Shown piece by piece: positions 8,553-63,940 of a DNA stretch of 64,000 bases. The notes under the pieces were generated by a model. The model was not told where the DNA came from and searched no databases. It saw only the letters and a list, made by a program, of their open reading frames with translations. Source of the DNA: Macrostomum lignano (taxonomy: Eukaryota); contig NIVC01001061.1 of the NCBI GenBank assembly GCA_002269645.1, positions 186,001-250,000 on the forward strand, in the 5' to 3' direction. How positions within the stretch are numbered: position 1 is the first letter of the stretch; each line of letters begins with the position of its first letter. The translations under genes were made by a program, and so were the position numbers.

Positions 8553-8571
8553 TTGTACTACCGTGGGATTA

Positions 8572-31900: not shown

Positions 31901-34900
31901 GGCTGGTGACCGAGTCTACCAGGTCTGGCAGGCTGATCACCTGCGATGATGGGGTGCGATGTTGGTGATTAGTCAATGACCGGCATGTGATCTTTTAAGT
32001 GACAGCCATGTGATATGGAGAGCGATCCTGAAAAACCGCCACTAGACCTTTTAACTGTCGCGTGTCCTCTAAACCAACCGTCATGTAGGTTTCAACCTAA
32101 CCTTCACGTGAAGGGGGGCCGTAGCCCAGCGGTAGCGCAGCTGCTCTGGTGTGCCAGCGACCCAGGCTCGATTCCAAGTGCAGTCACATTAATTTGGGGC
32201 TGAATTGGAATCTCGGCTTGGCTCTGCTCGTGCAATTAACGGCCTTGAGAGCCAACCCCCCAAGGCGCAGTGAAGTGTACATGCCTAACGATAATATAAA
32301 GTTAGGGCCGCTGTACACTCCTGTGTGAGCGTGTGCCTGCGTACGTATCCGCGCGCTTGTATGCCTGCTCAGGGGAGTCGGCGGAATGGGCAGTAATGCC
32401 TCTCGCCGGTTGTGTGCCTATGTCGCTTAAAGTGCGCCAGGGTGCACACAACCCCGCTGCCTCTAATAAAAAAAACCTTCACGTGACCTTTAAACTAACC
32501 GTCACTCGACATTCAAAATAACCGTCACTTGACCTTTAATCTAACGATCACGTGACCTTCAAACTAACCTTCCCATGACCTTTAAACTAACCATCATTTG
32601 ACCTTTAAACTAACCATCACGTGACCCTTGGACTAACCACCCAGTGACACCCAACGACCTTCAAATGGCCAAAAAATCTGCGACGCAACAAATTTAGAAG
32701 ACAAACCTGATTCTTATCCTTGGCTCCCCAGGGCAAGAACCAGCCAGTCCACAGTTCGGCAGCAAATATTGGCAAATTGGGGTTCCAGCCTTTGACGATG
32801 GACTGCAGCCACTTGGCATGCGCCTTGCTGTTGTAGTTGATGCCGGCGAACGCCCCGGCCAACGCCTTGGCGTGCCGGATGCCTTCGTCGCCGTCGCTGG
32901 TAAACAGGGCTTCCACTACACCGCTGCGGCGCATCGAGTCTGCCAGGTGCTGCAGGTAGCGGCCGTTGTCGCCGTAGCTGCCGTACTCGTTCTCCACCTG
33001 AGTGAATGAATGTCAGTGAGTGAGTGAGTGAGTGAGTGAGTGAGTGAGTGAGTGAGTGAGTGAGTGAGTGAGTGAGTGAGTAAGTTAGTGAGTGAGTGAG
33101 TTAGTGAAAGAGTGAGTGAGTGAGTGAGTGAGTGAGTGAGTGAGTGAGTGAGTGAGTGAGTGAGTGAGTGAGTGAGTGAGTGAGTGAGTTAGTGAAAGAG
33201 TGAGTGAGTGAGTGAGTGAGTGAGTGAGTGAGTGAGTGAGTGAGTGAGTGAGTGAGTGAGTGAGCGAAAGAGTGAGTGAGTGAGTGAGTGAGTGAGTGAG
33301 CGAAAGAGTGAGTGAGTGAGTGAGTGAGTGAGTGAGTGAGTGAGTGAGTGAGTGAGTGAGTGAGTGAGTGAGTGAGCGAAAGAGTGAGTGAGTGAGTGAG
33401 TGAGTGAGTGAGTGAGTGAGCGACTGACTGAGTGAGTGAGTGAGTGAGTGAGCGAGTGAATGAGTGTCAGTGAGTGAGTGAGTGAGTGAGTGAGTGAGTG
33501 AGTGAGTTAGTGAGTGAGTGAGTGAGCGAGTGAATGAGTGTCAGTGAGTGAGTGAGCGAGTGAATGAGTGTCAGTGAGTGAGTGAGTGAGTGAATGAGTG
33601 TCAGTGAGTGAGCGGGTGAGCAAAAGCCAACACTAAAAGCAAACCTGAAAGGCAATGATTGGCCCGCCGCGGCTCATCTGCAGGTCGGCAACCTCGTTGA
33701 TGACCACTCTGAGGTAGTCCTCGGCGGCCTGCGTGAATCCCATGTACATGCTGCGGACTCGCATGTTCGGATCGGACAGGAGCCACCTGCGGTTGCAGGA
33801 GAATGGAGTCGAATGATATCAATAAGAATGCATCAAAATTTTGGCCTCTCTATGCTTAGAGAAAAAAAACTATCACAGCCTCCTATGGTAGAGCTCACCC
33901 CTAGAGTACATAGAAATCGAAATCTCACCCCTAGAGTACATAGAAATCGAAATCTCACCCCTAGAGTACATAGAAATCGAAATCTCACCCCTAGAGTACA
34001 TAGAAATCGAAATCTCACCCCTAGAGTACATAGAAATCGAAATCTCACCCCTAGAGTACATAGAAATCGAAATCTCACCCCTTGAGTAAATAGAAATCCA
34101 AATCTCACCTCTAGAGTACATAGAAGATGAAATCTCATCCCTATGAGTACATAGAAATCGAAATCCCACCCCTAGAGTACATAGAAATCGAAATCTCACC
34201 CCTAGAGTACATAGAAATCGAAATCTCACCCCTAGAGTACATAGAAATCGAAATCTCACCCCTAGAGTACATAGAAATCGAAATCTCACCCCTTGAGTAA
34301 ATAGAAATCCAAATCTCACCTCTAGAGTACATAGAAGATGAAATCTCATCCCTATGAGTACATATAAATCGAAATCTCACCCTTATGAGTACAAAGAAAA
34401 TGAAATCTCATCCTTGCGAACATAGAAATCGAAATCTCACCCCTAGAGTACATAGAAATCGAAATCTCACCCCTAGAGTACATAGAAATCGAAATCTCAT
34501 CCCTAGAGTACATAGAAAATTAAATCTTACCTTATGAGTACAAATAAAATGAAATCTCATCCTTGCGAACATAGAAATCGAAATCTCACCCCTAGAGTAC
34601 ATAGAAATCGAAATCTCACCCCTAGAGTACATAGAAATCGAAATCTCACCCCTAGAGTACATAGAAATCGAAATCTCACCCCTAGAGTACATAGAAATCG
34701 AAATCTCACCCTAGAGTACATAGAAATCGAAATCTCATCCTTGCGAACATAGAAATCGAAATCTCACCCCTAGAGTACATAGAAATCGAAATCTCATCCT
34801 TGCGAACATAGAAATCGAAATCTCACCCCTAGAGTACATAGAAATCGAAATCTCATCCCTAGAGTACATAGAAATATAAATATCACCCCTAGAGTACATA

Positions 34901-37900
34901 GAAATCGAAATCTCACCCCTAGAGTACATAGAAATCGAAATCTCGCCCCTAGAGTGCATAGAAATCGAAATCTCATCCCTAGAGTACATAGAAATATAAA
35001 TATCACCCCTAGAGTACATAGAAATCGAAATCTCACCCCTAGAGTACATAGAAATCGAAATCTCGCCCCTAGAGTGCATAGAAATCAAAATTTCACCCCT
35101 AGAGTACATAGAATGCAAGCAAAAGGCAGAGAATTACTGACCCGGGCATGCCGCCGAACTCCCACTCGGAGCAGATAAACGGGCCCGGCCTGAAAATTAC
35201 GTAGAGCCCCAGCTCCTGGGCCAGCTTGAAAAATTTTCTACAATTTTTTATCGAACGGAACGCGTGCATTAGCTCAACTTTGATAAAATGCCCTTCAAAA
35301 TGCATTGCGTCAGATCTCAGTTCCCGTCGGCCAGGCCCCTAAACTCTCGATACCTCCTACTGCTCTACCTCTCCCTTTTACTGCTCTGCCACTCCGTTCT
35401 ACTGCTCTACCTCTCCCTTCTACTGCTCTACCTCTCCCTCCTACTGCTCTACCTCTCCATCCTACTGCTCTACTTTTCCCTTCTACTGCTCTACCTCTCC
35501 CTTCTACTGCTCTACCTCTCCATTCTACTGCTCTACCTCTCCCTTCTACTGCTCTGCCACTCACTTCTACTGCTCTACCTCTCCCTTCTACTGCTCTACC
35601 TCTCCCTCCTACTGCTCTACCTCTCCATCCTACTGCTCTACTTTTCCCTTCTACTGCTCTACCTCTCCCTCCTACTGCTCTATCTCTCCCTCCTACTGCT
35701 CTACCTCTCCCTCCTACAGCAATACCTTCCATTCTATGAATCTACCTCTCCCTCTACAACTCTCCCTCTCTATTCTATGACTCCCCCACTCTCTCTCTCT
35801 CCGACTCTACCACCATCCCTACAGGAATAGAGCTATGGCACAACCTCACAATCAGCCTCTGAGACCCTGCCTCACTAGTGCTGTCCTTCTTCACCAGTGT
35901 GAATATCATAGTTATATACCAATTAGATGGCTACGCAAGAGTATTAATGGACTAACTAACCTGACATTGAGCATGCCATTGAAATTGAAGTTGCCTTTAG
36001 TATCCTCGTGTAGATTCCAAGGTGCGTAGCTAATTGAAAAAAAGAAACAATTTCATGCGCAAATAAAGACACAGGTGTTCAAACAAACAAACACAATATA
36101 GGTATAAACAGAATTGATTACAGGTAGAGTAACTCACGTCTCTACAGTATTGAAACCGGCTGCCTTCAGCTTGAGCAGCCTATCACGCCAATAATCCTGT
36201 GGCACGCGGAAGTAATGAATTGCTCCAGATAGAATTTGAAACTTCACCCCATTCAGGTAGAATTGTCGGTCTCGAAATGTTAGGCTGGCCTGGTTCAGGT
36301 TGGGAGGTTCAGACTGGGTTATTCAAGCGTCAGAGGTTGGGGAGGGGTTCAGACTGGGCTACTCAAGTGTCAGAGGTTGTGGAGAGGTTCAGACTGGGCT
36401 ATTCAAGTGTCAGAGGTTGGGGAGGGGTTCAGACTGGGCTATTCAAGTGTCAGAGGTTGGGGAGGGGTTCAGACTGGGCTACTCAAGTGTCAGGGGTTGG
36501 GGAGGGGTTCAGACTGGGCTATTCAAGTGTCAGAGGTTGGGGAGGGGTTCAGACTGGGCTATTCAAGTGTCAGAGGTTGGGGAGGGGTTCAGACTGGGCT
36601 ACTCAAGTGTCAGGGGTTGGGGAGGGGTTCAGACTGGGCTATTCAAGTGTCAGAGGTTGGGGAGGGGTTCAGACTGGGCTACTCAAGTGTCAGGGGTTGG
36701 GGAGGGGTTCAGACTGGGCTATTCAAGTGTCAGAGGTTGGGGAGGGGTTCAGACTGGGCTACTCAAGTGTCAGAGGTTGTGGAGAGGTTCAGACTGGGCT
36801 ATTCAAGTGTCAGAGGTTGGGGAGGGGTTCAGACTGGGCTATTCAAGTGTCAGAGGTTGGGGAGGGGTTCAGACTGGGCTACTCAAGTGTCAGGGGTTGG
36901 GGAGGGGTTCAGACTGGGCTATTCAAGTGTCAGAGGTTGGGGAGGGGTTCAGACTGGGCTACTCAAGTGTCAGGGGTTGTGGAGAGGTTCAGACTGGGCT
37001 ATTCAAGTGTCAGAGGTTGGGGAGGGGTTCAGACTGGGCTATTCAAGTGTCAGAGGTTGGGGAGGGGTTCAGACTGGGCTACTCAAGTGTCAGGGGTTGG
37101 GGAGGGGTTCAGACTGGGCTATTCAAGTGTCAGAGGTTGGGGAGGGGTTCAGACTGGGCTACTCAAGTGTCAGGGGTTGGGGAGGGGTTCAGACTGGGCT
37201 ACTCAAGTGTCAGAGGTTGGGGAGGGGTTCAGACTGGGCTACTCAAGTGTCAGAGGTTGGGGAGGGGTTCAGACTGGGCTATTCAAGTGTCAGAGGTTGG
37301 GGAGGGGTTCAGACTGGGCTACTCAAGTGTCAGGGGTTGGGGAGGGGTTCAGACTGGGCTACTCAAGTGTCAGGGGTTGTGGAGAGGTTCAGACTGGGCT
37401 ATTCAAGTGTCAGAGGTTGGGGAGGGGTTCAGACTGGGCTATTCAAGTGTCAGAGGTTGGGGAGGGGTTCAGACTGGGCTACTCAAGTGTCAGGGGTTGG
37501 GGAGGGGTTCAGACTGGGCTATTCAAGTGTCAGAGGTTGGGGAGGGGTTCAGACTGGGCTACTCAAGTGTCAGGGGTTGGGGAGGGGTTCAGACTGGGCT
37601 ACTCAAGTGTCAGAGGTTGGGGAGGGGTTCAGACTGGGCTACTCAAGTGTCAGAGGTTGGGGAGGGGTTCAGACTGGGCTATTCAAGTGTCAGAGGTTGG
37701 GGAGGGGTTCAGACTGGGCTACTCAAGTGTCAGGGGTTGGGGAGGGGTTCAGACTGGGCTACTCAAGTGTCAGAGGTTGGGGAGGGGTTCAGACTGGGCT
37801 ACTCAAGTGTCAGGGGTTGGGGAGGGGTTCAGACTGGGCTACTCAAGTGTCAGAGGTTGGGGAGGGGTTCAGACTGGGCTACTCAAGTGTCAGAGGTTGG

Positions 37901-40900
37901 GAAGGGGTTCAGAGTGGGCTACTCAAGTGTCAGAGGTTGGGGAGGGGTTCAGACTGGGTTATTGAAGGGTTCAGATGGCTATTCAAGACTGGGAAACATA
38001 GCAATGATTTTGCTAAAGGCATGAACAATTGGCAAGACTTGTATTTTGAATTATAAATATTTTACATAGTAATGTTAGAAATCTCTATAATACTTTACTT
38101 AATCTGTATTTGCCAAATAGTTAAATTAGTTTTATTTCTTGGTAAATATAGCATTATAAATTCAAGCCAATTTTGTTTTCCAATGCTATTTATAGATAAC
38201 AAGGTTAACTTATTTTTTACTAAGCATACTAAGTAAAAGTTTTTGTGCAAATGCAATCACAATGCCTAATAAGCAAAATGTAGAAAATTTTAAAACACCA
38301 AAAGTTTTATAATTTTTCTTACTTAACCAATTATCAAAGTAAGGTGTCTTTTTACTTAGGCAAATGAGATTTATCAAATCAAAAAAATAGTAAAACTATA
38401 ACTATCAAAATCTCACTAGAGTTCATATCATGTTTTTGATCTTCTAATTTTAATAAAGCCTAGTCTAAGTGGAACTGCACTCAGGACAATGTATATATTG
38501 TTATTATTGAGGCTATCATTTTAATATAATGGTACTAAACAATATATGCTTAAAAGCTAGCCTTAGGCGTAAAATGCCTAGGGATCATATAAAAATGTTT
38601 TTAGCTATTTTTGCTACTACCAATGCCTTTAATTCTTTTTTCCCTTTAAAGCAGACATAAATTACTAAAAGTTATTTCCTAACTAGGGATGACAAAGCTA
38701 ATCTGTTAAAAAATTAAAACAATTAGAAGTTGTTAATACTTCGGGTGTGTCATAAGTAATGTCACTGCAGGCCTCTGTCTAAAATATGTAGGCACATGGA
38801 CTTGTGGGTAGTGTAGCTGCAAAGTATACTTAGTGAAGCAATAGCAGTGCATTTGAGACGTGCATAGGTTGTTTATGGCCCAAGCTATCGCAAGAATACG
38901 CCAAGCAGATTTAGCAAGTGCAACGCGATGAAAAACCATCTATGCAGCGAACAAAAATCACCATGAATCTCGACATGACGCCTGCACCAAGCAGATCCGC
39001 AAGGTGTTTAGCAGCCGGGGCTTGAATGACATCCTAAACTGCCTGGTTGCTGAGGATGAAAGCTGGCTCCACCTGGATGGCAAGGGCAGCAAGGCAGACA
39101 ATCGCTGCTGGCTGGGAGCTGGGGACTTCAGGCCGATGGTGACTAGGAAGTCCATCTCGGACAAGAAGACCATGCTGCTGGTAGCCTTCACGCCAAACAA
39201 ACGAGTCTCCATCTGCACAACTCCACCGAACACCAAGGTCGATGGCCAGTATTTTATCGACTTTGTCCGGCACACTGGAGACCTCTGGCGCACTGAGCCG
39301 CACTCTCCGGTCAAATCCATGTCACCGGGACGAAGTTCTGTGGCAGATGGACACCGCACGGCTGCACATCTGAAGGCTGTTTCGAATTTTCTGCCTGTAC
39401 GGCGAGTGAATATGCTCTGACAGTCCCTACAGCCCAGACTTCAACTTTTGCAAGAGATTCCTGTTCAAATGGCTGAAGGCTGACTTTTCCAAGAAGAGTT
39501 GCAAACCATGAAGAGGTCAAACAGGCCGCGTTGCACTGGTTATGGCAGTTGAAGGAAAAACACCTGCAGGCTGAGGTGGACAAGCTGTATGAGCACCGCC
39601 AGAGGGTGATTGATATTGGGGGACTCTATGTTGTTGAGTGGTACAGCTTTGTTAATCTGCGATTGCAAGTTTGTCTGTTTTCACATCAGTGACATTACTT
39701 ATGACACACCCGAAGTATTTCAAGTATATCTACTAGAAAAAATTGGTTAAAAATTAAAAAAATAATTTTTGCTTTGCATTTTCTACTTACTTTTTATACT
39801 CAAAACTTAAATTTTTTTTTCAATTTTAAAAATATAAAAGCAACTATTTTTATGGGTGACAGTTTTTTAACAGCCATTTTTATAAAAAAATAATAATATA
39901 GTTTGTTAATATCCCAATGAAAGCCCAATAAAGATTTATTTTTTCCTTATTATTAAGTACTTTTCTCTTCTTTCTAGTTTATACTTGATTTTCATACTAT
40001 GTGGTTGCATTGCAAAGTTATTTATTTGCAAAAAAACAATTTTTTATTAACTTTACTTTTTGTATGCATAGTGGCAAGTTATAGGACCCTCACTAATATC
40101 CTTAGGCCCTACTCCTAAGATGACATTTATGCCAAGAAAATTCCAATGCATAGAAACCTTCTCAGGTCAATAGCTTAGTGAATCTGATAGATAACATAGG
40201 TGCAATGTAGCAACATGGCATAATGCAGGCTATGCAATGTTTAAAATATAGCATATCAATTTATATAAAAAGATAAAATATTATTTTTTAGAAATCTATC
40301 TAACTATATTTGAAACTACACTTTAAATCTCTTAAAAATAATCTATATAAGACATAACATTTTTTAATTTTGAAATATTTTATGGTCCACATTTTATCAT
40401 AAAATTTTTTAATATTGTTAGAAAAATTTAGCTATATTACAAAAATAATATTTAAACAAACTTTGGCTTAGGTCCTACATAGTTCTTAACAAAATTGACT
40501 AAATTTTGGCATTATGATAAAACTTTTTTCTAGTGCACAATACACATTTTGTCCAAAAAATGTTCTAGCATACAGTGGACATAATATTAACTATGGCCTA
40601 GGCCAGGGGTTAGCAAACTTTGGCTTGCAGGCTAGTTCCCATACTCTCAAATTTATTACACAGTATGCCAGAAAAAATGACCCCTTACACAATAAATTTA
40701 TATAAAACTGTAAGTTTATACTATAAAAAAACAAATTTATTTGTCATATTAATATATACTAGACAATGGACATTATCAAAAAGGCATTGCAACAATAAAG
40801 GACATTTCCTACATTGTGACAATAGATTGTTCCATATGCTAGATACTTTAAGCCAATCATATTTTTCATGTCAATATAGACCTAAGAATTTTCTAGTATA

Positions 40901-43900
40901 CAAGCTGTTACAACCCACAGATTTTGAACCCAGGGAATTCCAATCCCCGGAACTATTTTTGCATATATTGAGATTAAACTCAAACAAAAACTTTTATAAG
41001 TTGGGATAGAGTTAAACATAAAGTAGAGTACATTCATGCAAAATTAGGATTTGAGGCAAACATTGACATTGTTGGCTGGGGTGCTGCACAGAATATTAGG
41101 AAAACTCTGGCCTCTACCTTTGCCTCTCCCTATGTCCCTTGTATCCTTTGAAACTTCTATCTTCCTTTCTGTTTTCTCACTTCTCTCTTGTCTCTTGTCT
41201 CTTCTCTCTCCTCTCATCTCTTCTTTCTTCTCTCCTCTGTCCCCTCTTCTTTTGTCTTTTCCCTCTCCCCTCTTATTCTTTTCTCTCTCCTCTCTTCTCT
41301 TCTTTCTTGTCTCTGCTCTCTATTGGAATAGGTTGACAAAACGCGGACAACTGTCCGTCACATTTTTGGATTCTCCTGGTGTTGCATTGCGCAACAGTGG
41401 TGTCAAGTGATGTGTCAAGTGGCGCGACACTGGAAACCTGGTGTCGTCATGCGTCGCATAGCACGACACAACAATGTGGCAACTTGGCAGCTAGCGTTGT
41501 CATGTGTCACATTGCGGCTTGGATCTATAGCCAAAACCTCGCAAACTGTGTTTCATTGTAATATTTTCACAGTTGTTTCCCAGTATTTAAATGTTCAAAC
41601 ATGTTTGATAATAACTAGTTCTTGAATTGTTCTTTTTTATTTTGACAGTAAAGTAACTAATACTTCAAATATAATTTTTAGAAATGTTACTTGTTGGTTA
41701 CAATGCGTGCGCTGTTTTTCTAAGTGTTGTACCTTTGTTGTTTTACTGTTTTTTGTTTCTAAATTTCATTTCTTTTTCCGCAAAATTGAAACGAATACTC
41801 TCGTCCCTCGCCCCATGGTCTCAGTGTTGGGAGTAAATGGCAGAACAGGAATTGTCTATTGCAACCTGGCTGCTGTGGTATGACAGAGAAATACATAGAC
41901 TTCTTTTTTAAACCGATTGCCCAAGCGCAACCCACTTTCATTAAGGACTCCTATGAGTTCAAGGCATACCTTATGGATAAAAACTGCATGTGGCGATAGG
42001 TTTGACTCTGGCAACCTGTGATGTCTCCATTCTACAAGTACTTCATTCCATAGCTTGTGATATGCATAATTTGCATTGATTGTACATATGGGTAGAACCA
42101 TAGATCAAAGTAAGTTAAACCAGTGATAGCCAATTTCAATTATTAAACCAACTTCAATAATGCAACACATGAATATAAAAGTTGTATGTAACTCAGCAAG
42201 GTTTGGATTGTGTGGCTTTGCCATGTACTCAAATTTGGTCCCTCTGGCCCATGAGCTTGAGTATGCTCTGTCCTGTGTACTTGACTCTAGATTGTTATAG
42301 GCATGTTGGTTGTATGCTTCCTACTTATATAATAAAATCAATTGATGATAAATTCTGCAAGGCACGATTTCTTTTCAAAAACCAAGCTTGACCTGTATTT
42401 GTTAGTGACTTGACTTGCAGTCCATAATGAGCTTCAAGCCTACTTTCAATATTTCTACTCACCTTGCGATATAAAGAAATGAGCCATGCAACGCATGCAC
42501 TATCACACAAAGAAAATTGTCTCAAGATCTGCTTGCTATGCTACAAAAAGGGCTCATCAATGCAACAAATAGGTAATGCCTCACTGAAACATATTTAAGC
42601 ACACTTTTTGTCAAACTACAATGCGAATGATAAGCAGCTACTTGCAGCACTCTGTGCCTGATGCAACAAGCTTCTGGCTGACATTGACAAGGGCATTAAA
42701 GTGCTAAATGTTTTGATGAACTCATCTGAGGTCATAAAGGTGAGCCCAACAAAGATTACACAACAGTCCAGCAGTTGTGCTTGCAAAATATGTGAGACTG
42801 CCCAGTTCAACATGATTAGGAAAGGCCTGGGAACATGGAAACCAGAGCCACATTTGCTTGGACAACCCCAAGCTGTATCCCAAGTGTTCAGATCCAGATC
42901 ATGGTCTGCCACCGGCATAACCTGTTGTCATCTGCCAGCACTGCCACTCAATGGTCGGCAGAGGTTTGCTTCACTACTGCATGCAACACAGCAATGAGAA
43001 AATCTATTCAGTAAGTTGTCGCTAGACCGACGAGGTGCCAAAATCTATGCAGGTGACATGATTAAAGCTAAGGCTGCTTTTACCAACTCAAACTCTAGCT
43101 TTTAAATGGCAACTAGAGGTTGTGATCTTATAGTGTATGTTGGGCAATGGGCTAGTAGTTCTACATCAATGAGAGGTGGCTGCGCCGTACCAGCAGAGGA
43201 ATTCAGCCAATTCTAGCAGATGCTGTATTTGACTGGTTGGCAGACTAAGTTGGCCACCCAATTTTTTCGAGCATGGAAAGGACACAAAAGCATTGAGCCA
43301 AATTTGCGCAGCAAACTGAGCACCATTGACTCTGCTCTAGATGATTTGTTTGAGTTGACTAATCTAGAAATGGACTGTGCCAAAGGAAAAAGGGAAATGC
43401 ACAGCATTATATTCTGCACTAATCTTCTAGCTCTGATTGGCAGAGTGATAACACGTTGTCAGGTCAGTGTGGATGACAGCGCATTGATAAAAGTTGGCAT
43501 AGACAGCAGAGGCAGCTTCTTGAAGTTTTGTGTTAGCATTGTGCCTGCTCAAGGTTTAAAAGATCAACCTACTGGAATTGCAGCACATACACAGAAGGCA
43601 CATGCCATTTCCATTTTGAGGATAGGAGTCTGTAAACTGCTCCTGCTTGGCATTGCTGAAACTGTTTCTGAGTCCAACAATAATCTGCAGCAGATCCTGA
43701 ATCTTTTTAATTTTCAAGGATTTTCATTCTGTACAGTCAGTTGATATGAAAATTTTAAATGCGATCCTGGGACTTCAGTGCTGCAGCAGCACCCATCCCT
43801 GCCCTTGGTGTAAGACTGCCAAGATTGATTTTTCTAATCCAGACCACATGAATGTGTTGAGATTGATTGGCAATATTTGGCTACAGGCATTTGAGTACCA

Positions 43901-46900
43901 GCACACTGTAGAAGAAAAAGCGCCGCGCAATGTGTCTGCTGCTGCTTTCAAAAGCTATGTGCATCCTCCTCTGCTCGAAGTTCCAGATAGCACGATGGTG
44001 CTCCAGGCCATTCCACCAATGGGGCTGCATCTCTTGCTTGGCGTGACCAATTGACTATTCGAAGAACTGGACACTCAACTGCAAGGACTCAAAGACTGTC
44101 AGATAAGCACAGATGACTGGCTATAGCAGCTTGGCCTTCGACAACCATTGCAGAACAGTGGGAACTTTGCCAGAAATGCCTGCGAGTGTCTTCTAAATGG
44201 TGTCAACATTTTGATTGCAATGCTGGCTCAGCACAATGTGTTTTTGGCAATGCCTATAGCTCATGCCCTATGCTGCTTCCACAATGTAAAGGCCTCATGC
44301 TTTGGTATGAGTGTGTGTGTGGAGACTTTGAGAATCAAGTCCGGGCATTCGAAGAAGCCTATATTGATCTTGGAATCTGCGTCACCCCAAAAGTCCACGC
44401 TATTATTGACCACATTGTCCAGTTTTGAACATGTCCAATCTAGCTGGAGAACTAAAGAAGGGACTTGGCTTCTGGTCTCAGCAAGTGGTTAAGACTGCAC
44501 ACCACAATTTCAACAGCATGTGGCAAGACTTTCAGATTAATTTTCATCATCCATTGTATCCAGATTGATTGGGCAAGTGTGTTGTTGCATACTGCTCTTG
44601 TCATGCCTAAACAAAATGTGAACTAGACTGCAAATTAGGATTATACATTTCTCTTTATTGGAATGAACAAATAGTTTTTAGTCAGACCCTTTAGACCATT
44701 TTAAAATTCTATTCCAGCTTTGCAATGCATGCATAGAGATTGTTGGTTCACTATAAAATGAAATCTAAAAAAGACAAGATAAGCTAGCTATTGTCTTATC
44801 CCGATAGGACCCTAGTTATTTTTTCTTTTATTTATTATTGAATTAATGACAGGAATACACTAGGTAGCTGGTGGAAACCTTAATTTAAATTCTTTCTTTC
44901 TTTCTAATTTAAAAACTTATATTGCAAAAGTCAATGGTAAAAAGCAAAAAGAATTTAATTAAGTTTTCTACTAGCTACTAGAATTATTTCTATGGTAAAC
45001 TTATATTACAGAAGTCCTTGTTCTTACCCATCATCATGGAAAGGGAATAGCTTCCTTTGAAAACTCAGTAGAATTTAATAGGATATGCCTATGGTTCCAA
45101 GGGCCAAAATCGCATGAATACGAGAGCATATGCAGCAAATTTACAGGCTCACAGCCAATGAGATGGTAGCTATGTATGAGGAGGGAATAATAGCTACAAC
45201 TCAAAAGCAAGTGATAGAAAAATATCTGGGATAATATGCCTTCCATGCCTTGCATCACTCAAGCACAATTTTGTGCATTGCTTCTTTGTCTGCTTTTATT
45301 TAGCATTCTCTGTACTTTATGAGTGTTTTTTGTTATATTTAGTCACAATTATTCATTGATATTTCAATTTATACTTTATACTTTGGATTTTGAAGGGCAA
45401 TGGAATACCTATGAATTATAATGAAAAGTTTCTTAAGATCATATTTTTCAAATTTCACAAACTCATGTAGACATTCATTTTTTGCATCACGCATATTGAA
45501 AACTAATAGTAATTAGGTCATATGGTAATAAAGTGCTGTAGATCAGAGATAGCTTGGCAGATTTTTTGATATTGCACATATGCTATGCTAAGGTCTAGAT
45601 GAGTGTGTAAATCATTGTCATTTCAGGCTGATTCTATTTTCACCTTTAGATGGCTTTGAGACATGTGTTAAGATTAAGACTAAGTACAATGCCAGTACAT
45701 ATAATAATGAAAATAAATATTTATATATCTTAAAAAGTATATTATTTTAAAACTAGAAGCAGAAGCATTTTTTATTAGAGGCAGGGGAGTTGTATGCACC
45801 CTGGCACACTTAGAGCAACATAGGCGCATAACTGGCAAGAGGCATTACTACCCATTCTACCAACTTCCCTAAGCAGGCATATAAGCATGCGGATACATAC
45901 ACAAGCACATACTCACATAGGAGTGAATAGTGGCCCTAACTTTATGTTATCATTAGGCATGTACACTTTACTGCACCTTGGGGGTTGGCTCTCAAGGCCA
46001 TTAATTGTGCGAGTAGAGCCAAGCCAAGATTCTAATTTAGCCCCAAATTAATATGACTACACTTAGAATCAAGCTTGGGTTGTTGGCATACCAGAGTAGC
46101 TGCATTACCGCTGGGCTATGGCCCTCCCTGAAGCACAAGCATACAATCTAAAAATATTTTCCCCAAGGGACCCATAGTATATATGTACACTAACTTTTTG
46201 TATATAAATTTTGTAAGCTAAACAATTGTTTATAAATGAAAATGCATTATTATCATTGAATGGGATCATAATAATGCTCATAATAGCCAGCCAATCATAT
46301 TTAATAGCAAACTGTCTCTGCCTTTAATATTTGTAACTGTAGCATCCCTTCTTATCAATATAAGTTCTTTTTTCTTTAGATATTTAAAATTTATATCATA
46401 TTTCTTTAAAATATTGCTATATACAAAATTACCTTTAGAAAAAATGACAACCCATTTTAACTCTTTTTGCAAGACTTGCAATATTTATTTATGAAAAATA
46501 AGCTTTACTAGCTATGTAGCTATACTATAATTTTTCTTCTCAAAAAGTTATGTTGTCTGCCAGCAGACAAAAATATAGTAAACAAAATGACTGCACACTA
46601 ATTTATAGGCCTATAAGCCAAAAAATGGCATGAATTTTTATACTAAAATTAGTACACCAACTTGAAAGGGGCATTTGGATGCCAGAATTTTTATATATAT
46701 ATAACCTTCTAGAGTCTAGAATTCATAAGGATCCTATGACAATATCCTACTTTAAATTTATTAAATACAATTTACCTTTGACATCACAATAACTTATAAG
46801 TGTAAATTTGACATTAATAACTAGTTGACCTATACAATGGATAAAATACTTCATGGAGAATCCTGACTAGCACACACTCAAGCATGATTCATTAAATAGC

Positions 46901-47155
46901 CAATGGGAAGAAAGAACTAGTTCTTCTCTGTACAAAACAATTTAGATTGGTAAATAAACTTACTCGTTTTATTTGCTCAGCAACTTGCTTATCTTCCTTA
47001 TCATCAATATGACTATGAGCGACATTTTCTGGTTCGTGCTGATTGGTACTTTGTTGTGACATTGTACTGACATAGTAAACAAAAAAGAAGGCAACAATGA
47101 ATGACACTCCGATCAGAAGCTTTAGCCGCGCTGAATGTCTTCTTCTTGAAAACAT
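22974..47155 (-). CDS. GH35 beta-galactosidase (GLB1L2/GLB1L3-like), 11 exons, N-terminal membrane anchor, one apparent frameshift
   Basis: Exons 46964-47155, 36138-36289 ([33 protein letters not shown]), 35961-36029 (YAPWNLHE), 35142-35237 ([16 protein letters not shown]), 33645-33786 (GGPIIAFQ), 32707-32997 (VENEYGSY acid/base; AAELWTGWF nucleophile), 31649-31940 ([21 protein letters not shown]), 30007-30062, 29794-29925, 27848-28557 ([37 protein letters not shown]) and 22974-23060. All are GT-AG and phase-compatible except a 1-nt shift near 28040-28043. Confidence 0.93.
23235..27665. repeat. ~4.4-kb purine-rich satellite (~19-21-bp AGAGAGGGGAGAGAGCAGGGC variants), intronic
   Basis: Fills beta-gal intron 10; the long six-frame ORFs here are artefacts of the repeat. 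Confidence 0.97.
28655..29755. repeat. 22-bp tandem repeat (GGATTATCAATAGATCCCCACA)n, intronic
   Basis: About 50 units in beta-gal intron 9. Confidence 0.96.
30122..31425. repeat. 16-bp tandem repeat (GTAATTTCGGTCAGGT)n with 80-bp higher-order period, intronic
   Basis: The variant TGTGATCTCG recurs at 30241, 30321, 30401 and 30481. Confidence 0.95.
32112..32473 (+). mobile_element. Full-length tRNA-derived SINE (~360 bp), young copy
   Basis: Head AGGGGGGCCGTAGCCCAGCGGTAG (A box) ... GGCTCGATTCC (B box), tail AATAAAAAAAA, and a 13-bp target duplication AACCTTCACGTGA at 32099-32111 and 32474-32486. Confidence 0.92.
33014..33612. repeat. (GAGT)n microsatellite, intronic
   Basis: Directly visible; abuts the acceptor of exon 32707-32997. 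Confidence 0.97.
33890..35112. repeat. 30-bp tandem repeat (CTAGAGTACATAGAAATCGAAATCTCACCC)n, intronic
   Basis: About 40 units. Confidence 0.96.
35350..35720. repeat. 21-bp repeat (CTACTGCTCTACCTCTCCCTT)n, intronic
   Basis: Directly visible. Confidence 0.94.
36300..37985. repeat. 40-bp G-rich tandem repeat (TGGGGAGGGGTTCAGACTGGGCTATTCAAGTGTCAGAGGT)n, intronic
   Basis: About 42 units next to the acceptor at 36290-36291. Confidence 0.97.
38739..39715 (+). mobile_element. Internally deleted Tc1/mariner element (977 bp)
   Basis: Matching TIRs CTTCGGGTGTGTCATAAGTAATGTCACTG flanked by TA on both sides. Transposase remnants: [30 protein letters not shown] and [16 protein letters not shown] (mariner YSPDL-like motif). 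Confidence 0.9.
42700..44610 (+). mobile_element. Decayed Chapaev-type (CMC) transposase
   Basis: Fragmented motifs [75 protein letters not shown] and [17 protein letters not shown], with several stops and frameshifts. Element ends not defined. Confidence 0.75.
45768..46129 (-). mobile_element. Full-length, heavily C>T/G>A-mutated copy of the SINE at 32112-32473
   Basis: The reverse complement aligns end to end with 32112-32473; possible GAAGCA target duplication at 45762-45767 and 46130-46135. Confidence 0.93.
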
Positions 47156-48408: not shown

Positions 48409-50316
48409 TTATTCTGCAGTGGGCCTTGGATCACGTTTCCAAGTGCAGCCAATTCACGCAGGTCTGCATATGAAACTGCCTGATGCAAGAGTGAGTTGGC
48501 CAACGACTGCGGCAATCTCTCAGCTGTCAGCTGCGGGATTTTAAATTCTGCAGCCAATTTAGTCCCGAATTATTAGGGATAATTGTTTCCACTCACAGCA
48601 CCTGCCTCAGCACCAGATGGCATTAATCGTGCTGAAATTGGGCGCAACTTTTTTTCTGATGGACCGGCAAATAAAAAACTAAGCCGGCTGTTTACAGTCC
48701 TACATTTTTCGAACGAGCAATCATGCAATTGCATGGCCCCAGGAGTTACCGGCGAGTTACCTGTAATTTCCTGCGTGACCCAATTGGAAAGCTTGGTTTA
48801 TCTACGTAAATATACGTAGATTTTTTTAACGTAAATTTTACGTGAATGTTGTTCGTGGGTATTACGTATAATTTTCGTGTTCCATGGATATATATAACAA
48901 ACAACTTTTAACTAAAATTTGCTCCACAGTATTTTATTTTTGAATATTGTCTGCATATTTGAACAGGTTCATCATATACTTTCGCGAAGGTCTTCTCTTT
49001 GAGCAGAAGCGTAAAGGCAGCAATAACGATTGTGGTCAATGATTTGCCTTATGCAATTAGTGTTTTATTAAATTAGATTAAGTGTTTCTTTTAATGGGAT
49101 AATTCACAATTTTTTTCCTGAGCATACAACAAAAAATTAGAGTTATATTTGTTTTAACGTGTTGTTTTAAAATCTAAATTTCAAACTGATTTACTCTTCC
49201 ATTCGCGTTCGCGCCCAGGCCGGAAACATGCATGGACTGGACTAAACATGGAAGTGTTTAGTTAGTGAGAGGTGGATTAATTAACACATGTAAACGTAAC
49301 TCCAATTGCGAATTACTCTAATAGTTACAGTGTATAATGGTGATAAGATTTCTTGTCGCTGTTGTTTGATTTCACGACTATAACATGCAGTTAAAAGTCT
49401 CACTGTCTCTGGCTGATTTTGATTGCTAGTCATACTCATAAACACATTGTGAAACCGTTTGGCCCCAATAATTTAAACTGGAATCTGCAGATCTGTTGTA
49501 TTGCATTAAGTTCTAGAACAGATGGTTACTTACATCTCATCCTTCTTATCCTTCTATTTACACAGGCCTACAAATTTTACTTGAAATGCTGAAATCTTAG
49601 ACATTGACAATGTCAATATTTAGCTATTGAGTAGGTCTATTGGCCTATATGTAGCTGTTGACCTATTGTTTCACCAGACTACTAGCTTAGCTAATAACTA
49701 GAATTGTTGGTCAATTGTATTGTACTTATATATTTTATTTTTGCTAGTTGCTAACTATAGTATAATAACTTTTTATGCTTTTGCCAAGATTTGGTTGTGG
49801 GTGGTAGACTGGTAGGTAGCAAAATATTTTCCTTTTTTATAATGATATTTATTGCTAGGTTCGACATTTATTGCTAATTTATTGCTAATTGACATTTATT
49901 GCTAATTTATAATGAACCAGATCATTAAATTTACCATTCTACCAATGTTAATAGGCTAAATAAACAAAATTTTTAAATAAAGTTTAAAATAAATATATCT
50001 TATAGTTTTGCTTTATTGGCAAAGACTAGATAGCCTTGCTGATTATTCTTATATTATAACTAAAGTAATAAAAAAGTCTTATATATAAATAATACCTATT
50101 GCTGCGTATTGCACTAGAGCATCCTCTAACACATTAATCTGCCATAGTTATTCTGTGGTACTGAGAAATATAATTTTAACTTTAATTATGAATATTTTAA
50201 ATTTTGATATTTACTTTTACCCTATTAATTTATTTTACAATTTCTCTTTCTTTCAGTAATATCATATCTATGGTTCCTAATAACCAAAAAAACATGAACG
50301 AAATGTTAAAAAACTT

Positions 50317-52302
50317 ATGAAAAAGATTATTCATAGCAAATATCAAGTAAGAACAGCAAGGTCTAATTCTAATTGTTTGGAATCAGCATCAACTGAATTA
50401 GAGGCATCTTTGTTCTTAGAGGCTTGTTCAACTGATGGACCAAATCTTCAATCTAGATCTAACAGTTCTGAAATTATAGATCAGATAGATCAAAGTTCAA
50501 TTGCAAGCAGTACATCTATTGATGTTTGGCCAGAAGCAAGCTCTACTAGTGAAAATAGTATTCCTGATGATAGCATAAATCAATTTATTAAACAATGGGT
50601 AATCAAATTCAACATTCCTATCTATAGTCTAGATGTACTACTACCACGGCTACAAGAGAAATATCCTACTTTACCCAAGTGTGGTAAAACACTTTTGAAA
50701 GCAAATCTTCCTCAGCCAATTATCCAGGCTATTTCAACTGGCCAAATAGCATACTTTGGTCTGAGGTGTTTTCTTAACAATAAGGACTTTTCCTTCTGTA
50801 ATCAGGCTGATTTGGTTGTTTTTGTTGATGGTTTCTCACTTGCTAAGTCTTCAACTTCATCTTGCTGGGCAGTCTTAGGACTATTAGGATCTAATGAAAC
50901 ACCTTTTGTCATTGCTATCTATCAAGGACATGTAAAACCAACAGCTTCAGAATTGATGTCACCTTTAATTAATGAAATCAATGAGCTTATGTCAGACCCA
51001 AGTCAAACACGTTTAAATTTGAAGTATATTCTGGCTGATACACCTGCTCGAGCACTTATCAAGTGTATTAAAGGACATACTGCTTTTTATTCCTGTGATC
51101 GTTGCGTTATCCGTGGACAAAGAGTTGAAGGTCGAATTGTGTTTGATGACTTTTCTGTAGTGCCACTTAGAAGTAACCAGTCTTTTCGTTCAAAGATTGA
51201 TCATCATCATCATTCAGGAACATCTCCACTATTGGCTCTTGCAACATTCAACATGATATCTCAGCTTCCCTATGACTTCATGCATTTACTTTGCCTTGGA
51301 GTAGTTAAGCGCATGATTTCTTTTTGGCATTGTGGTCCACTTGGAATTTCTAGACTGACTAGTAGGGCTCGAGTAGCAATCTCAGAGAGGCTAGAGTTAA
51401 TACGGACATTTATGCCTTCTGAGTTCAATAGAAAGACTAGACCTCTTGCCCAGTATAAATTATGGAAAGCAACTGAGTTTCGTACTTTCTTGTTGTACAC
51501 TGGAATATGTGCATTAAAGAATAACTGGATTCCACGTCAAATTTTTCGGAACTTCTGTCTACTTTTCATTATTGCTCGAATTATGTGCTCTAGTAGTATT
51601 GAAGGGCATAGGAAGAACATGGTTGCTCGTCTTATTAGAGTTTATTTACAAAGTTGCAAGCAAAGTTATTCTAGAATCTTCTTAGTTTATAATTTGCATG
51701 CACTGCTGCATCTTCCAGATGATTGTGAGTTATATGGTTGTCTTGACTCTTTTAGTGCTTTTCGGTTTGAAAATGCTCTTGGCTTCTTGAGGCGGCGTGT
51801 TAGAAGTGGTAACTTGCCATTCATGCAGCTTGTAAACCGAATTAGAGAAGTAACACAAGTTACAACTGTAAATCTGCAAGGCTCTCAACAGAAAAACATT
51901 GAATTTTTTGAAAAAGTGAGTGACTGCCTTCCAAGAAACATTGCACTGCAAATTGATTTCCAACCAATTTTTTTTGCCCAAGCTAAATTTCAAGGACTGC
52001 AACTATCTGTCAAACATCAGAGAGACAGCTATTTTAGTTTTAATGGTGTAGCTACTAAGCTATCAAAGATTTTTACTCGAGCTGATTGTTCATCCATCTA
52101 TGTCATTGCAAGATGCTTCAAACAAAAAGAAGACTATTTTAATTTTCCATGCAATAGCAAGTCACTTGGAATTTTCATTGCCTCAAAGCTCTCAGATACT
52201 TTTGTAATGTTTGAGCTTACAGATCCAGTTACAAAGCTTTTTGCTATGCCTCTTGGTGAGGATTATGACGAGGAGTCAGTGCTCATTGTTCCAATGATTT
52301 AG
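50317..52302 (+). CDS. EnSpm/CACTA-type transposase (661 aa, uninterrupted)
   Basis: Motifs VFVDGFSLAKSS, ILADTPARALIKCIKGHTAFYSCDRC, PYDFMHLLCLGVVK, WKATEFRTFLLY and YNLHALLHL..YGCLDSFSAFRFENALG. Confidence 0.92.
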   Translation: MKKIIHSKYQVRTARSNSNCLESASTELEASLFLEACSTDGPNLQSRSNSSEIIDQIDQSSIASSTSIDVWPEASSTSENSIPDDSINQFIKQWVIKFNIPIYSLDVLLPRLQEKYPTLPKCGKTLLKANLPQPIIQAISTGQIAYFGLRCFLNNKDFSFCNQADLVVFVDGFSLAKSSTSSCWAVLGLLGSNETPFVIAIYQGHVKPTASELMSPLINEINELMSDPSQTRLNLKYILADTPARALIKCIKGHTAFYSCDRCVIRGQRVEGRIVFDDFSVVPLRSNQSFRSKIDHHHHSGTSPLLALATFNMISQLPYDFMHLLCLGVVKRMISFWHCGPLGISRLTSRARVAISERLELIRTFMPSEFNRKTRPLAQYKLWKATEFRTFLLYTGICALKNNWIPRQIFRNFCLLFIIARIMCSSSIEGHRKNMVARLIRVYLQSCKQSYSRIFLVYNLHALLHLPDDCELYGCLDSFSAFRFENALGFLRRRVRSGNLPFMQLVNRIREVTQVTTVNLQGSQQKNIEFFEKVSDCLPRNIALQIDFQPIFFAQAKFQGLQLSVKHQRDSYFSFNGVATKLSKIFTRADCSSIYVIARCFKQKEDYFNFPCNSKSLGIFIASKLSDTFVMFELTDPVTKLFAMPLGEDYDEESVLIVPMI

Positions 52303-52476
52303 CTGGAACAGCTAGGATTACAAGCTTAACTAGGTAAATGTTTTTCAAGATATATTATTAATTCATTTGAAATATAATTCCTGAAATATACTTGAAATAC
52401 TTGAAGATTTCTCTGATTTCGATAATCATTCCAATCCCAAGTAAAAAGATTGTTACTCTTATTACACCACTTTCAG

Positions 52477-54281
52477 TGCATTCGAGCAACCAGGCTTTCA
52501 CAATAGTCGAGTTTCTGGAGGACAAGTCAGTTGATTATGTACCATCGATTTGGCTATTAGCTTCGGACAGTGTTGCCTACCCCACTTCGCAATCAACTAG
52601 TCGAGTCGCCTCTTTACGTTCAAAAATGGAAAAGCCTACAGCTACACTTGAGCCACTATGGCGTTCATGCTCTATTAGAGTCTTAGGTATGGCATCAACT
52701 GAACGAAAAGCACGCGAAAAGCTAAAGAAGCTAGAAGCTGCTGCTGCTGCGGGCGAGGATACACCTGGTCTGGAGACTACTGACTCAGAAGCACCTAGGC
52801 AAAGAAAACCAGTTCATCGACTTATCGATATGGAACCAACACAGAAAAAGCGTAAGAAGAATAAATATGTATCAAGTGATGACGAGTCGTCGAAGTCTAA
52901 ATCCGATTCGGAGACTGAATCCGAAACTGATATGCTGCAGCAAGAGGACGTTGGTGATATTGGCTCGCTATTTTCGCTCCATGGTTGTTCTGCCAGTGCC
53001 AGTTCGCATCGACAAGATGACGAGACGTCTGCTGCTAGCGTCGCTAGCTCAAATCCATCAACAGCTGGACAGTCTGCAAGCGCCTACAACTCGGTTCAAC
53101 GACAGAAGCAAGCATCTGCTGCTAGCTTCGCTAGCTCAAATCACTCAGCAGTTGGACAGTCTGCAAGCGCCTGCAACTCGGTTCAACGACAGAAGCAAGC
53201 ATCTGCTGCTAGTGCTAGCGTCGCTAGCTCAAATCACTCAGCAGCTGGACGGTCTGCAAGCGCCTACAACTCGGTTCAACGACAGAAGCAAGCATCTGCT
53301 GCTAGTGCTAGCGTCGCTAGCTCAAATCACTCAGCAGCTGGACGGTCTGCAAGCGCCTACAACTCTGTTCAACGACAGAAGCAAGCATCTGCTGCTAGTG
53401 CTAGCGTCGCTAGCTCAAATCACTCAGCAGCTGGACGGTCTGCAAGCGCCTGCAGCTCGGTTCAACGACAAGAAACAGCCGCTAGCATGAATTTCTCTGG
53501 TCGGTCGGTGTAAGTGCGGGCCTGGGTGATTTCAATGTATAATCCAAACCACTAAAATATTCGCTTTTGAAAGCTTAATTGTCATGCTCTTTAACCTCAT
53601 CCATTCAGTCCTGCTACACCGGTACAATCGGCAGCTGGCTGCTCGCTTGAATACACCAGTGATGATGACGACACCATTGGACCAGGCCCACTGGACAGTC
53701 ATTTGACTCCAAGCCCATCGCGACGGGCGGATAATGCTGCTCCATTGGGTACAAGTTTTTTGTCGCAATTTTGCGCAGAGGAAAACTTTCGTTACACGGG
53801 AGATGACGAGACGACTTTAATGCGTTTAGTTTGCTCCACATTTTCTTTAGCGAAGGAAAATAACCAGCTGCTAAAACAACTGGCGGCTAGTCGTCAAATG
53901 CCCCAGCTTGCAAAGCTAAATTTGCCCTTTGTGCTGCCAGTAAGCACAAAGGACGAATTGGATCAGCTGGAACAGTACTTAAGGATTCCTAAACAATCAA
54001 CCATGCTGGCCTCCTATATCGGCTGCATGGTTTCTGATTCTCAGCGCAAAGCCGTTTTTATGTTAATGCCAAAGTTTATCACTACGCAATTGGCTGCGTC
54101 TTTTAATTACGAAGGCAAAAGAGGTGGAAAGGCTGCCTTCAAGGATTTTGCTAACACAATTTCCTTGGTTAGGCGACTGGTAGCCCAGGGTAGCAAGTCG
54201 GGCAAGTGCGAATCAAATATAGTTAAAACAGCCATTGCCGACTGGCTCCGTCAGGCGCCTGCCCGCCTTAAGGCGACCTAG
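52477..54281 (+). CDS. CACTA accessory protein (ORF2, DUF4806-like C-terminus), spliced; 5' exon not located
   Basis: N-terminal FTIVEFLEDKSVDYVPSIWL motif and ~5 internal 29-31-aa repeats. Intron 53510-53608 (GTAAGT..TTCAG) joins in frame to LPVSTKDELDQLEQYL..FNYEGKRGGKAAF..IADWLRQAP, a DUF4806-like region by recall. Confidence 0.75.
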
Positions 54282-55689
54282 CTGGCTCCCTTGCACTAGT
54301 TCTTATTTGTTTGTTGAAACTTGAAAGCTAGTAGTTATAGAGATCCACAATCCGCGACGGAATTATTTCAGTCAGTTGCATTTTAGTCTTATATGCAGAA
54401 GTAACTACACATGGTGAAGAAATCAGTGGTATACAATCAATCCATGCAGTTAGTAGTTACTTATTTACTTAAAAGTATAAAAAACATCTCCAAATCACAA
54501 AATAGCGTAAGATAGGTCACTTTCCACCTATTACCTACCCTACCCAACTCAATTACCTAGACCTAGAGCTACTCCTAAATTAGTTCTACCCATTAAAAAA
54601 ATTATTTGGGGGAAATAAACTACAATGCTAGAAATCTTCAATCTAGGAAAATAATTTTCACGAGCACTTTAGGAATAATTGATTGCTCCTTTGCCTTTGA
54701 GATTTGACTTGCTTTTTAGACTAATCCACTACTAATGGTAGCTAATCTACAACAGTTACAAATATATTCAAGATATGAGTAGAAAGGCAATTTTCTAAAT
54801 AGAATCCTCGTGCCGAGCCCGTAATGTTACTTTTGCCTCTTCCGTTTCTCTTCCTACCTTAATTCTTGCAGATGCCACCTGCTCTAAAAGCGTGCCGTTT
54901 CTCTTCCTGCCTTGAATCTTGCAAATTTGAATTCAGCCTTTAACTTTTTCTTGTGTCTTTTCTCAATATTTATTTTCGCTCCTATTTTTTAATTAAGTAA
55001 TCTTTTTTGCATGCTGAAATTAGGTGCAAACATTGCAGTCTTTACTTTTTCATGTTCTATAGTTTTGTATACTTGGGTGTTATATATATATTTCATAATG
55101 CCAATAATAAAACATACTATGGGTGCGACTTGAAACAGAACGGTAAAAAATACCGTTAATTCAGTCAAATGTAGTGAAGAAACATATAATTAAGAGTATA
55201 TTTTAATCTTCGCGTTCTGTGTTCCATTACTTAATTACTATTTAAGAAAAATTAAACTGTAAATTGCTTGCCCGAAGAAGTTAAGTGGTGAGAAAAATAT
55301 GCACCAATGGTTTGTGGCTTAAAATCTAATTAGAACCTGACGATTATATTACTATACGAGCTAATTAAGCTGTTTTAGGACGTTAATCTCCTGCGTAGAT
55401 AATACGTACATTATTCGTAAAATCAGATACGTAGATTTAAAGCATTTTCACGCGACACTTTCAACGTGAAATCTACGTAAAATATCTACGTATATTCTAC
55501 CAAAGTTTTGTTGATATTTAACGTAATTTTAACGTAAATTTTGCGTAACTTTTCCAGTTGGGTGAATAAATGGCCAAGCTTTCGTCTCTGAGTGGATGAT
55601 TCGAAATGAGTTACGAACAGATGAGAACGAAAAATTACATTTAGTGACTTAGCAATGAGCTTGGGAAAGAGGTGTAGCTTATTTTATTG

Positions 55690-56488: not shown

Positions 56489-56521
<33 letters not shown>

Positions 56522-61936: not shown

Positions 61937-62257
61937 AATTATCAACCTGGCCGACAGAAACAACAATACTACTATTCCTAGTAATATTCTCGACACGAAA
62001 TTTCCCTATATAGTTTGCACAAAGCTCGCACAAAAGCATGGATGTTGTTACTCGCTGTTAATCTTTATGTATTAATGATAACAATAAAAACAATGATAAT
62101 CTCTAATACTCTCCCACAATACTACTTCCACGAAGTAGTTTATCGAAAAAATGAGTAAATATAACTGACAAATAAAAAAACTTCAGGAATGATTTTTCTA
62201 GCAATTTATGCTAGATAAAGTTACTCTCAGAATGTTCCTGCATAGCACAAAAAGATC

Positions 62258-63701: not shown

Positions 63702-63940
63702 AAACAGAAACAGAAATTTGCAATCAAGCAGAAAAGAACCAAGATGCTAAACAACAGAGTTTACTATCAACGAATACTTTTGTCGGCAGCAAAATGCAAT
63801 TATCTTGTCCGAGAGAAACAGATGTTTTTTGAGGACTCATTTACCGCCAATGATTGTGGCTCAAATTTATTTGACACAGACAGCCTGCTAAATGTGTGCG
63901 CTCGAAACATCAATCAGTCTGAGTCGTACTCAACTGTCAC

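Follow-up and report, generated by a model that had tools for sequence, protein, structure and literature searches.

Several described processes turn cytosine into thymine in mobile elements. CpG decays to TpG or CpA in methylated DNA, as in vertebrate Alu and L1 elements and in methylated invertebrate sequences; repeat-induced point mutation (RIP) operates in fungi, through RID and DIM-2 in Neurospora, and RIP-like CpG hypermutation occurs in basidiomycete transposons; CpA is methylated by DNMT3 in mammalian germ cells, stem cells and neurons; and retroelements of vertebrates are edited by APOBEC3. The free-living flatworm Macrostomum lignano retains DNMT1 and DNMT3 (PMC9246332, PMC11292947), low-level 5-methylcytosine (5mC) has been reported in it (PMC11292947, PMC9246332, PMC10658182), and its PIWI-interacting RNA (piRNA) pathway silences transposons (PMC4604429); the methylation map of this animal was described as unknown in a 2022 review. 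We analyzed a stretch of 64,000 nucleotides from this species (the window), which lies on contig NIVC01001061.1 (contig coordinate = window coordinate + 186,000) of GCA_002269645.1, the assembly Mlig_3_7 (PMC12801592). Within it, a glycoside hydrolase 35 (GLB1-like) gene holds two full-length copies, A and B, of a short interspersed element (SINE). Including four other loci (L002-L005), 152 kb of one genome was compared overall. We found that copy B had lost about 40% of its cytosines before G or A on both strands, whereas its sister copy A was unmutated.

Copies A (plus strand) and B (minus strand) were aligned end to end over 360-361 columns, with one or two single-base indels. From A to B, the 360 aligned positions showed 23 C>T, 23 G>A, 4 T>C, 1 A>G, and 3 transversions, so that C:G>T:A made up 46 of the 54 differences and the ratio of transitions to transversions (Ts/Tv) was 51:3. 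The context of each change was taken from copy A, with the two strands folded together. Cytosine was replaced by thymine at 22 of 48 CpG sites, 17 of 54 CpA sites, 4 of 48 CpT sites, and 3 of 56 CpC sites. The initial annotation, which had proposed a RIP-like hypermutation of copy B, gave about 45 such changes, 4 reverse changes, and 3 transversions, with contexts of about 23, 16, 4, and 2; these counts were accurate, as our recount yielded 46/5/3 and 22/17/4/3. Compared to CpT and CpC together (7/104), the CpA sites alone were hit significantly more often (17/54, p=9e-5), and so were CpG and CpA combined (p=3e-8). Expressed as -ln(1-p), the rates were 0.61 for CpG, 0.38 for CpA, and 0.07 for CpT/CpC, which placed CpG at about 9 times and CpA at about 5.6 times the CpT/CpC rate. 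When the 24 CpG dinucleotides of copy A were followed into copy B, 13 had become TG, 5 CA, 2 TA, and 1 CC, and 3 were kept. The GC content was 57% in copy A and 45% in copy B.

The changes in copy B were evenly distributed over the length of the element, and those of the plus and minus strands were interleaved as expected at random (24 runs among 45). The effect of the preceding base was weak (A/T > G > C), with a preference for A/T (21/38 versus 18/64, p=0.01), and the CpA triplet hit most frequently was CAG (8/18, not significant). The index (CpA+TpG)/(ApC+GpT) was 1.51 in copy B and 1.2-1.8 in the region, which was not RIP-like, and the TpA/ApT index was 1.21 in copy B and 1.19 in copy A. 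With 23 changes per strand and the order CpG >= CpA >> CpT ~ CpC, the hypermutation was indeed two-stranded, directional, and context-specific, as originally claimed. Since C>T changes on two interleaved strands depended on the 3' neighbour, the process probably acted on double-stranded DNA through an enzyme that reads CpG and CpA.

The direction of change was determined with three outgroup pieces of the SINE (copies C and D, and fragment E), which served as the reference in place of a family consensus. Where they overlapped, they agreed with the base of copy A at most A/B differences. Eleven CpA-type sites had a usable outgroup, and 9 of them showed the copy-A state, while the copy-B state was present in copy D at the other 2. 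The changes were therefore derived in copy B, and the direction toward T/A that had been read from copy C, which keeps 6 of 7 CpGs, also agreed with D and E, both mostly in the copy-A state. Copy C had accumulated 4 transitions, 7 transversions, and 4 indels; copy D had 19 transitions, 21 transversions, and 16 indels, and kept CpG at 7/15 sites. Retention of CpG was thus 13/22 in C and D versus 3/24 in B (p=0.0016), with Ts/Tv close to 1 in both C and D. Judged by transversions and indels, copy B is younger than C and D, yet 21 of its 24 CpGs were lost, which made it a true outlier. C and D were unaffected, but both are short or truncated, and five copies or fragments in all were compared.

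Three local mutation baselines were established. The first compared singletons with the majority among five copies of a young 6.8-kb DNA transposon (48778-55563 in the window, the others in L002-L005), and comprised 16 C>T, 5 T>C, and 17 transversions (21:17), with C>T at 3/352 CpG, 5/885 CpA, 5/900 CpT, and 3/404 CpC sites. The second, from 22 minisatellite arrays in the window, counted 68 C>T, 48 T>C, and 97 transversions among variant types (116:97) and showed a preference for neither CpG nor CpA. For the third, every other interspersed-repeat pair in the 152 kb was used, and transitions to transversions were 101:110 with symmetric direction. The minisatellite variants may include register noise and the transposon singletons may include assembly errors; the three baselines still agreed, with Ts/Tv of about 1.0-1.2 and no CpG or CpA preference in any of them. 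The 51:3 of copy B differed from them at p=1e-5, 4e-9, and 3e-11, respectively, whereas copies C and D behaved like the baselines. By these local standards the pattern of copy B is neither chance nor neutral ageing, in line with the earlier view that CpG decay alone would not give it.

Essentially no CpG hypermutability was seen outside depleted patches, which fits the low global 5mC reported for M. lignano. The young 6.8-kb transposon encodes a 661-aa transposase (open reading frame (ORF) 50317-52302, relatives annotated DUF4218 or PF13960) and carries a DUF4806 gene with one 99-nt intron, as well as subterminal inverted repeats (48809-48826 and 55479-55496). Identity among its five copies is 98.5-99.9%, and the transposase region was CpG-poor in every copy, with an observed/expected ratio (o/e) of 0.12-0.54.

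Copy B lies inside an AT-rich, CpG-depleted patch of roughly 7 kb, which makes up most of the first GLB1-like intron and contains relic transposon reading frames (Table 1). With copy B removed, the unique DNA of the patch had a GC content of 0.36, CpG o/e of 0.26, CpA/TpG o/e of 1.30/1.36, and TpA o/e of 0.80. Background unique DNA, taken from the rest of the window and the flanks of the four other loci, had CpG o/e of 0.82-0.97, CpA/TpG of 1.04-1.17, and TpA of 0.65-0.88. Immediately upstream of exon 1, at 47-49 kb, the CpG o/e was back at 0.9-1.2, and the other introns and exons of the GLB1-like gene, along with two further genes in L005, were not CpG-depleted. The residual CpG o/e of copy B (0.22) was similar to that of the patch (0.26). 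Copies C and D, on the other hand, were embedded in CpG-normal DNA, and the CpG fate of a copy thus tracked its neighbourhood, as locally methylated DNA would give. Judged from base composition, the pattern looks like transposon-patch methylation rather than gene-body methylation. Nowhere else in the window was CpG o/e as low (0.15-0.32) or CpA/TpG o/e as high (up to 1.6) as in the segment at 42-45 kb, which looks like a second CpG-decayed element. Further small AT-rich patches with CpG o/e of 0.16-0.37 were located at L003:3000-4000, L004:2000-3000, and L004:5000-7000, suggesting that the M. lignano genome is a mosaic of CpG-depleted islands.

We further compared the CpA component of copy B with the patch around it. 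The TpG/CpA excess of the patch was about what its CpG loss alone adds (an estimated +0.18 o/e units). Had the patch lost 31% of its CpA as copy B did, a CpA/TpG o/e of about 0.9 and a TpA o/e of about 1.25 would be expected by estimate, but 1.33 and 0.80 were observed. Since the patch showed neither CpA loss nor TpA gain, CpA>TpA looks confined to the SINE; CpG loss is domain-wide. Mutated CpA sites were not nearer to CpGs than unmutated CpA sites (p=0.34). CpA changes as secondary products of CpG decay were ruled out by this lack of a proximity link together with the ancestral TG/CA in the outgroups. The CpA half of the spectrum is unusual, and comprises 17 changes in one copy; we know of no good animal precedent for it.

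The element has the hallmarks of a SINE: it is 362 bp long and non-coding, contains TAGCCCAGCGGTA and GGCTCGATTCC box-like motifs, ends in a AATAAAAAAAA tail, and is dispersed as five copies or fragments within 152 kb, with target-site duplications of 11-12 bp on both full copies. The duplication of copy A is perfect over 11-12 bp; that of copy B is identical between its halves at 11/12 positions, and the single mismatch is a transversion. The head of the element was not called as a tRNA by ARAGORN and had no Rfam tRNA match even at E<=10, and it is only the box motifs that suggest a tRNA origin. The B-box-like motif, GGCTCGATTCC in the family, reads AGCTTGATTCT in copy B after three C>T/G>A changes. 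The exact family first base of copy B and its clean duplication indicate that the source transcript started at the usual internal-promoter start. Because an intact, Pol III-competent promoter would have been needed at the source, and the B-box-like motif is now mutated, at least those changes probably followed insertion, and copy B would not be the master of a subfamily. The longest reading frame of the SINE, used as a protein query, and two exact-pattern scans of metagenome contigs returned no match. The four other M. lignano loci, reached through paralogues of the 661-aa transposase, gave one diverged SINE copy and one fragment. The insertion site of copy A is a short tandem array (32469-32639, units of about 23/46 bp), whose unit includes the target-site duplication (A)CCTTCACGTGA. 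Copies A and B are mutually inverted, 13.3 kb apart, in the same pre-mRNA, and could pair as double-stranded RNA of about 360 bp, on which ADAR or a small-RNA pathway might act.

The spectrum of copy B is, we tentatively suggest, best explained by focal cytosine methylation at CpG and CpA followed by deamination, a reading of base changes that stops short of firm belief. A normal retrotransposed copy of the roughly 360-bp SINE, whose 5' end is precise and which carries an A-rich tail and a 12-bp target-site duplication, would have landed in the first GLB1-like intron, inside a patch of transposon relics that was, or still is, cytosine-methylated in germ line or stem cells. Methylation after insertion would have affected CpG and, to an unusual degree, CpA on both of its strands. 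Deamination of 5mC to thymine would then produce the order CpG >= CpA >> CpT ~ CpC, equally on the strands and with few transversions or indels. CpG methylation would extend over the whole patch, and de novo methylation of CpG and CpA, possibly DNMT3-type and small-RNA-guided, would be focused on the SINE. We infer methylation as the agent from the literature on DNMT1 and DNMT3 in M. lignano, and DNMT3-type targeting of CpA would account for the rest. The preference of DNMT3-type enzymes follows the order CpG > CpA >> CpT > CpC, which matches.

Several points weigh against focal methylation. The CpA rate was about 60% of the CpG rate (0.38 versus 0.61), and a CpA:CpG ratio of about 0.6 is far above the methylation ratio known for animal DNMT3 enzymes. 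The absence of CpA loss and TpA gain from the patch makes SINE-only CpA targeting an extra assumption. A small-RNA-guided model must also account for the untouched C and D, although both are fragments and may not be transcribed. Moreover, the hypermutated copies number one among the five copies or fragments.

Two other explanations deserve weight, and we consider both unlikely. In the first, a two-strand enzymatic deamination was aimed at the repeat, either as a homology-dependent, RIP-like process or through direct C-to-U/T conversion at CpA and CpG by a DNA methyltransferase or a deaminase. The preponderance of C:G>T:A, the prominence of CpA, with A/T somewhat preferred at -1, and the seeming restriction of the CpA effect to the SINE rather than the flanking patch are all in keeping with this, and a review has considered that RIP-like use of methylation might occur beyond fungi (PMC9246332). 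However, full-length copy A was spared, 13 kb away in the same gene, as were the older, though short, copies C and D; CpG was hit at least as often as CpA, unlike in Neurospora RIP; and the regional (CpA+TpG)/(ApC+GpT) did not rise to RIP-like values. Fungal-type, homology-driven RIP is therefore not supported, and the shortness of the older copies limits the comparison by homology. The repeat-induced process of the initial annotation is likewise not indicated, since copy A was untouched, C and D kept CpGs at a Ts/Tv of about 1, and the indices were not RIP-like. Its broader proposal of a new methylation or deamination defence in an animal survived in part: methylation and deamination are plausible, given the patch CpG o/e and the presence of DNMT1 and DNMT3, but the CpG half is familiar decay.

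The second, similarly doubtful explanation is that the changes were older than the insertion, in that the source copy or a minor subfamily was already T/A and only part of the CpG loss took place at the present site. The copy-B state of 2/11 CpA-type outgroup sites in copy D is consistent with this, and a CpA component missing from the flanks would be expected if it had arisen elsewhere. The source, however, would need the same unusual mutation process, the CpG o/e of copy B equals the patch level, and the three B-box-like changes stand beside an exact 5' end and clean duplication that imply an intact promoter at transcription.

Ordinary neutral ageing in an AT-rich region with GC-to-AT bias is very improbable. 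Per site, C>T did outnumber T>C about 5-fold among the singletons of the young transposon, and the region is AT-rich, but the baselines had no CpG or CpA effect and a Ts/Tv far from 51:3, C and D retained CpGs despite being older by transversions and indels, and CpT and CpC in copy B were nearly unchanged.

Editing of SINE RNA or cDNA before integration, by APOBEC/AID-like C-to-U or ADAR A-to-I activity, is scarcely credible: AID/APOBEC-like deaminases occur in some lophotrochozoans (PMC5889660) and the inverted A and B in one pre-mRNA could make double-stranded RNA, but the strand bias of APOBEC editing exceeds 10-fold and no such editing turned up in 19 invertebrate genomes (PMC4866542), the 23 C>T and 23 G>A of copy B were randomly interleaved, as the earlier exclusion of one-stranded APOBEC had it, and depended on the 3' base without a 5' motif (TC, CC, WRC), and ADAR, which acts on RNA of one strand only, predicts A>G where the outgroups give G/C as ancestral. 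Among other causes, ultraviolet light was rejected because dipyrimidine contexts were disfavoured, alkylation because CpC/CpT contexts were, transcription- or R-loop-linked deamination because the changes lacked strand asymmetry, and gene-body methylation because the rest of the GLB1-like gene and two other genes were not CpG-depleted.

The GLB1-like gene, on the minus strand, was rebuilt from nine exons with canonical AG/GT borders. The reconstruction was consistent with a gene call ending at 47155 and with UniRef A0A1I8IYY1, an M. lignano protein that is 97% identical and has no contig on record. Copy B occupies intron 1 in sense orientation, 835 bp downstream of exon 1, and copy A occupies the 0.6-kb intron separating exons 6 and 7 in antisense orientation (Table 1). 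None of four full-length candidates (655 or 663 aa) agreed with the 655-aa product on record. A search for a homeologous or allelic locus of this hidden-polyploid genome, with the translated C-terminal exon as query, returned no match, and the ORF at 19620-20414 was not on record. In the last part of the gene, at 27833-28557, the reading frame is discontinuous: the conserved C-terminal block (DTFVDMSDW...GRYW...) and the Ala/Pro/Ser-rich exon before it are read in different frames and share about 90 nt, which may reflect a frameshift in the assembly or unusual splicing. Several tandem arrays lie within the introns of the gene.

Table 1. Positions of the SINE copies, their target-site duplications, and the surrounding features (window coordinates unless a locus is named).
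Feature	Position	Strand	Remarks
SINE copy B, hypermutated	45768-46129	-	full length; A-rich tail; A-box-like motif intact
Target-site duplication, copy B, tail side	45756-45767		GAAGCAGAAGCA
Target-site duplication, copy B, head side	46130-46141		GAAGCACAAGCA
SINE copy A, young CpG-rich reference	32112-32473	+	full length; 24 CpG
Target-site duplication, copy A, head side	32100-32111		(A)CCTTCACGTGA; other half 32475-32486
SINE copy C, partial, outgroup	8570-8678	+	3' 100 nt
SINE copy D, outgroup	L003:657-857		other contig; diverged, truncated, 72% identical
SINE fragment E, outgroup	56521-56563	-	about 40 nt
CpG-depleted AT-rich patch	40001-46890		most of GLB1-like intron 1; holds copy B
Relic DNA-transposon reading frames	43220-44428	+	no Pfam match
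Relic read as mariner-like	~38.9-39.5 kb		no Pfam match
GLB1-like exon 1	46964-47155	-	ATG at 47155; GT donor after 46964
GLB1-like exon 2	36138-36313	-	far end of 10.6-kb intron 1; junction matches UniRef A0A1I8IYY1

Tandem repeats occupy about 40% of the window (25.9/64 kb) and are mostly minisatellites with units of 15-40 bp (such as 23235-27666, 36306-37958, and 62256-63702). One 4.4-kb array of a purine-rich 21-mer has a GC skew of about 0.7 and an AT skew of about 0.8. An exon with a TCF/LEF-like HMG box was located at 58861-58986 (ORF 58390-59007, plus strand; Pfam HMG_box, E=7e-10), outside all called genes in the locus listing.

The footprint in copy B suggests that methylation in M. 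lignano is patchy, lies on transposon-relic DNA instead of gene bodies, and can wear down an inserted element in a short time. If the CpA component were general, it would point to an animal with either strong non-CpG methylation or a RIP-like mutator, and would bear on the restraint of mobile elements in flatworm stem cells and germ line, and on reports, themselves disputed, that CpA methylation dominates in parasitic flatworms. If it were a one-off, copy B would represent ordinary decay of methylated DNA with an odd local spectrum. We think it improbable, on the base changes of this copy, that M. lignano has a repeat-focused, two-strand hypermutation of CpA and CpG, acting by strong CpA methylation of single transposon copies or by direct deamination, that disables copies as an animal counterpart of fungal RIP. 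Such a hypermutator in an animal would be important if confirmed genome-wide.

Set against the known systems, copy B resembled each in part. Like retroelements edited by vertebrate APOBEC3, it carried clustered C/G-to-T/A changes compared to its relatives, but APOBEC3 acts on one strand and is guided by the base on the 5' side, whereas the changes in copy B were two-stranded and depended on the 3' neighbour. Mammalian CpA methylation by DNMT3 shares the context order CpG > CpA >> CpT > CpC and the strand symmetry, but the CpA:CpG ratio of about 0.6 implied in copy B is far above mammalian values, and to our knowledge no mutational footprint of CpA methylation as strong as this has been described. 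With fungal RIP and the RIP-like CpG hypermutation of basidiomycete transposons, copy B shared transition-only, two-strand C-to-T change and a preference that includes CpA. With the sister copy and the older, though short, copies spared, it showed no sign of homology dependence, and it differed from RIP further in CpG being hit at least as often as CpA, in its RIP indices, and in its animal host; no RID-type enzyme is known in M. lignano, and no search for one was made. The decay of methylated DNA matched in the two-strand CpG>TpG/CpA change, in the CpG-depleted surroundings with a corresponding TpG/CpA excess, and in the presence of both DNMT1 and DNMT3. It did not match in the near-equal CpA>TpA of copy B, which the flanks did not share, nor in the M. 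lignano genome being otherwise not CpG-depleted, so that the implied methylation would be patchy and transposon-linked rather than gene-body. Together, the CpG half of the spectrum is the well-known decay of methylated DNA, and new only in its place, a patch of transposon relics in a free-living flatworm.

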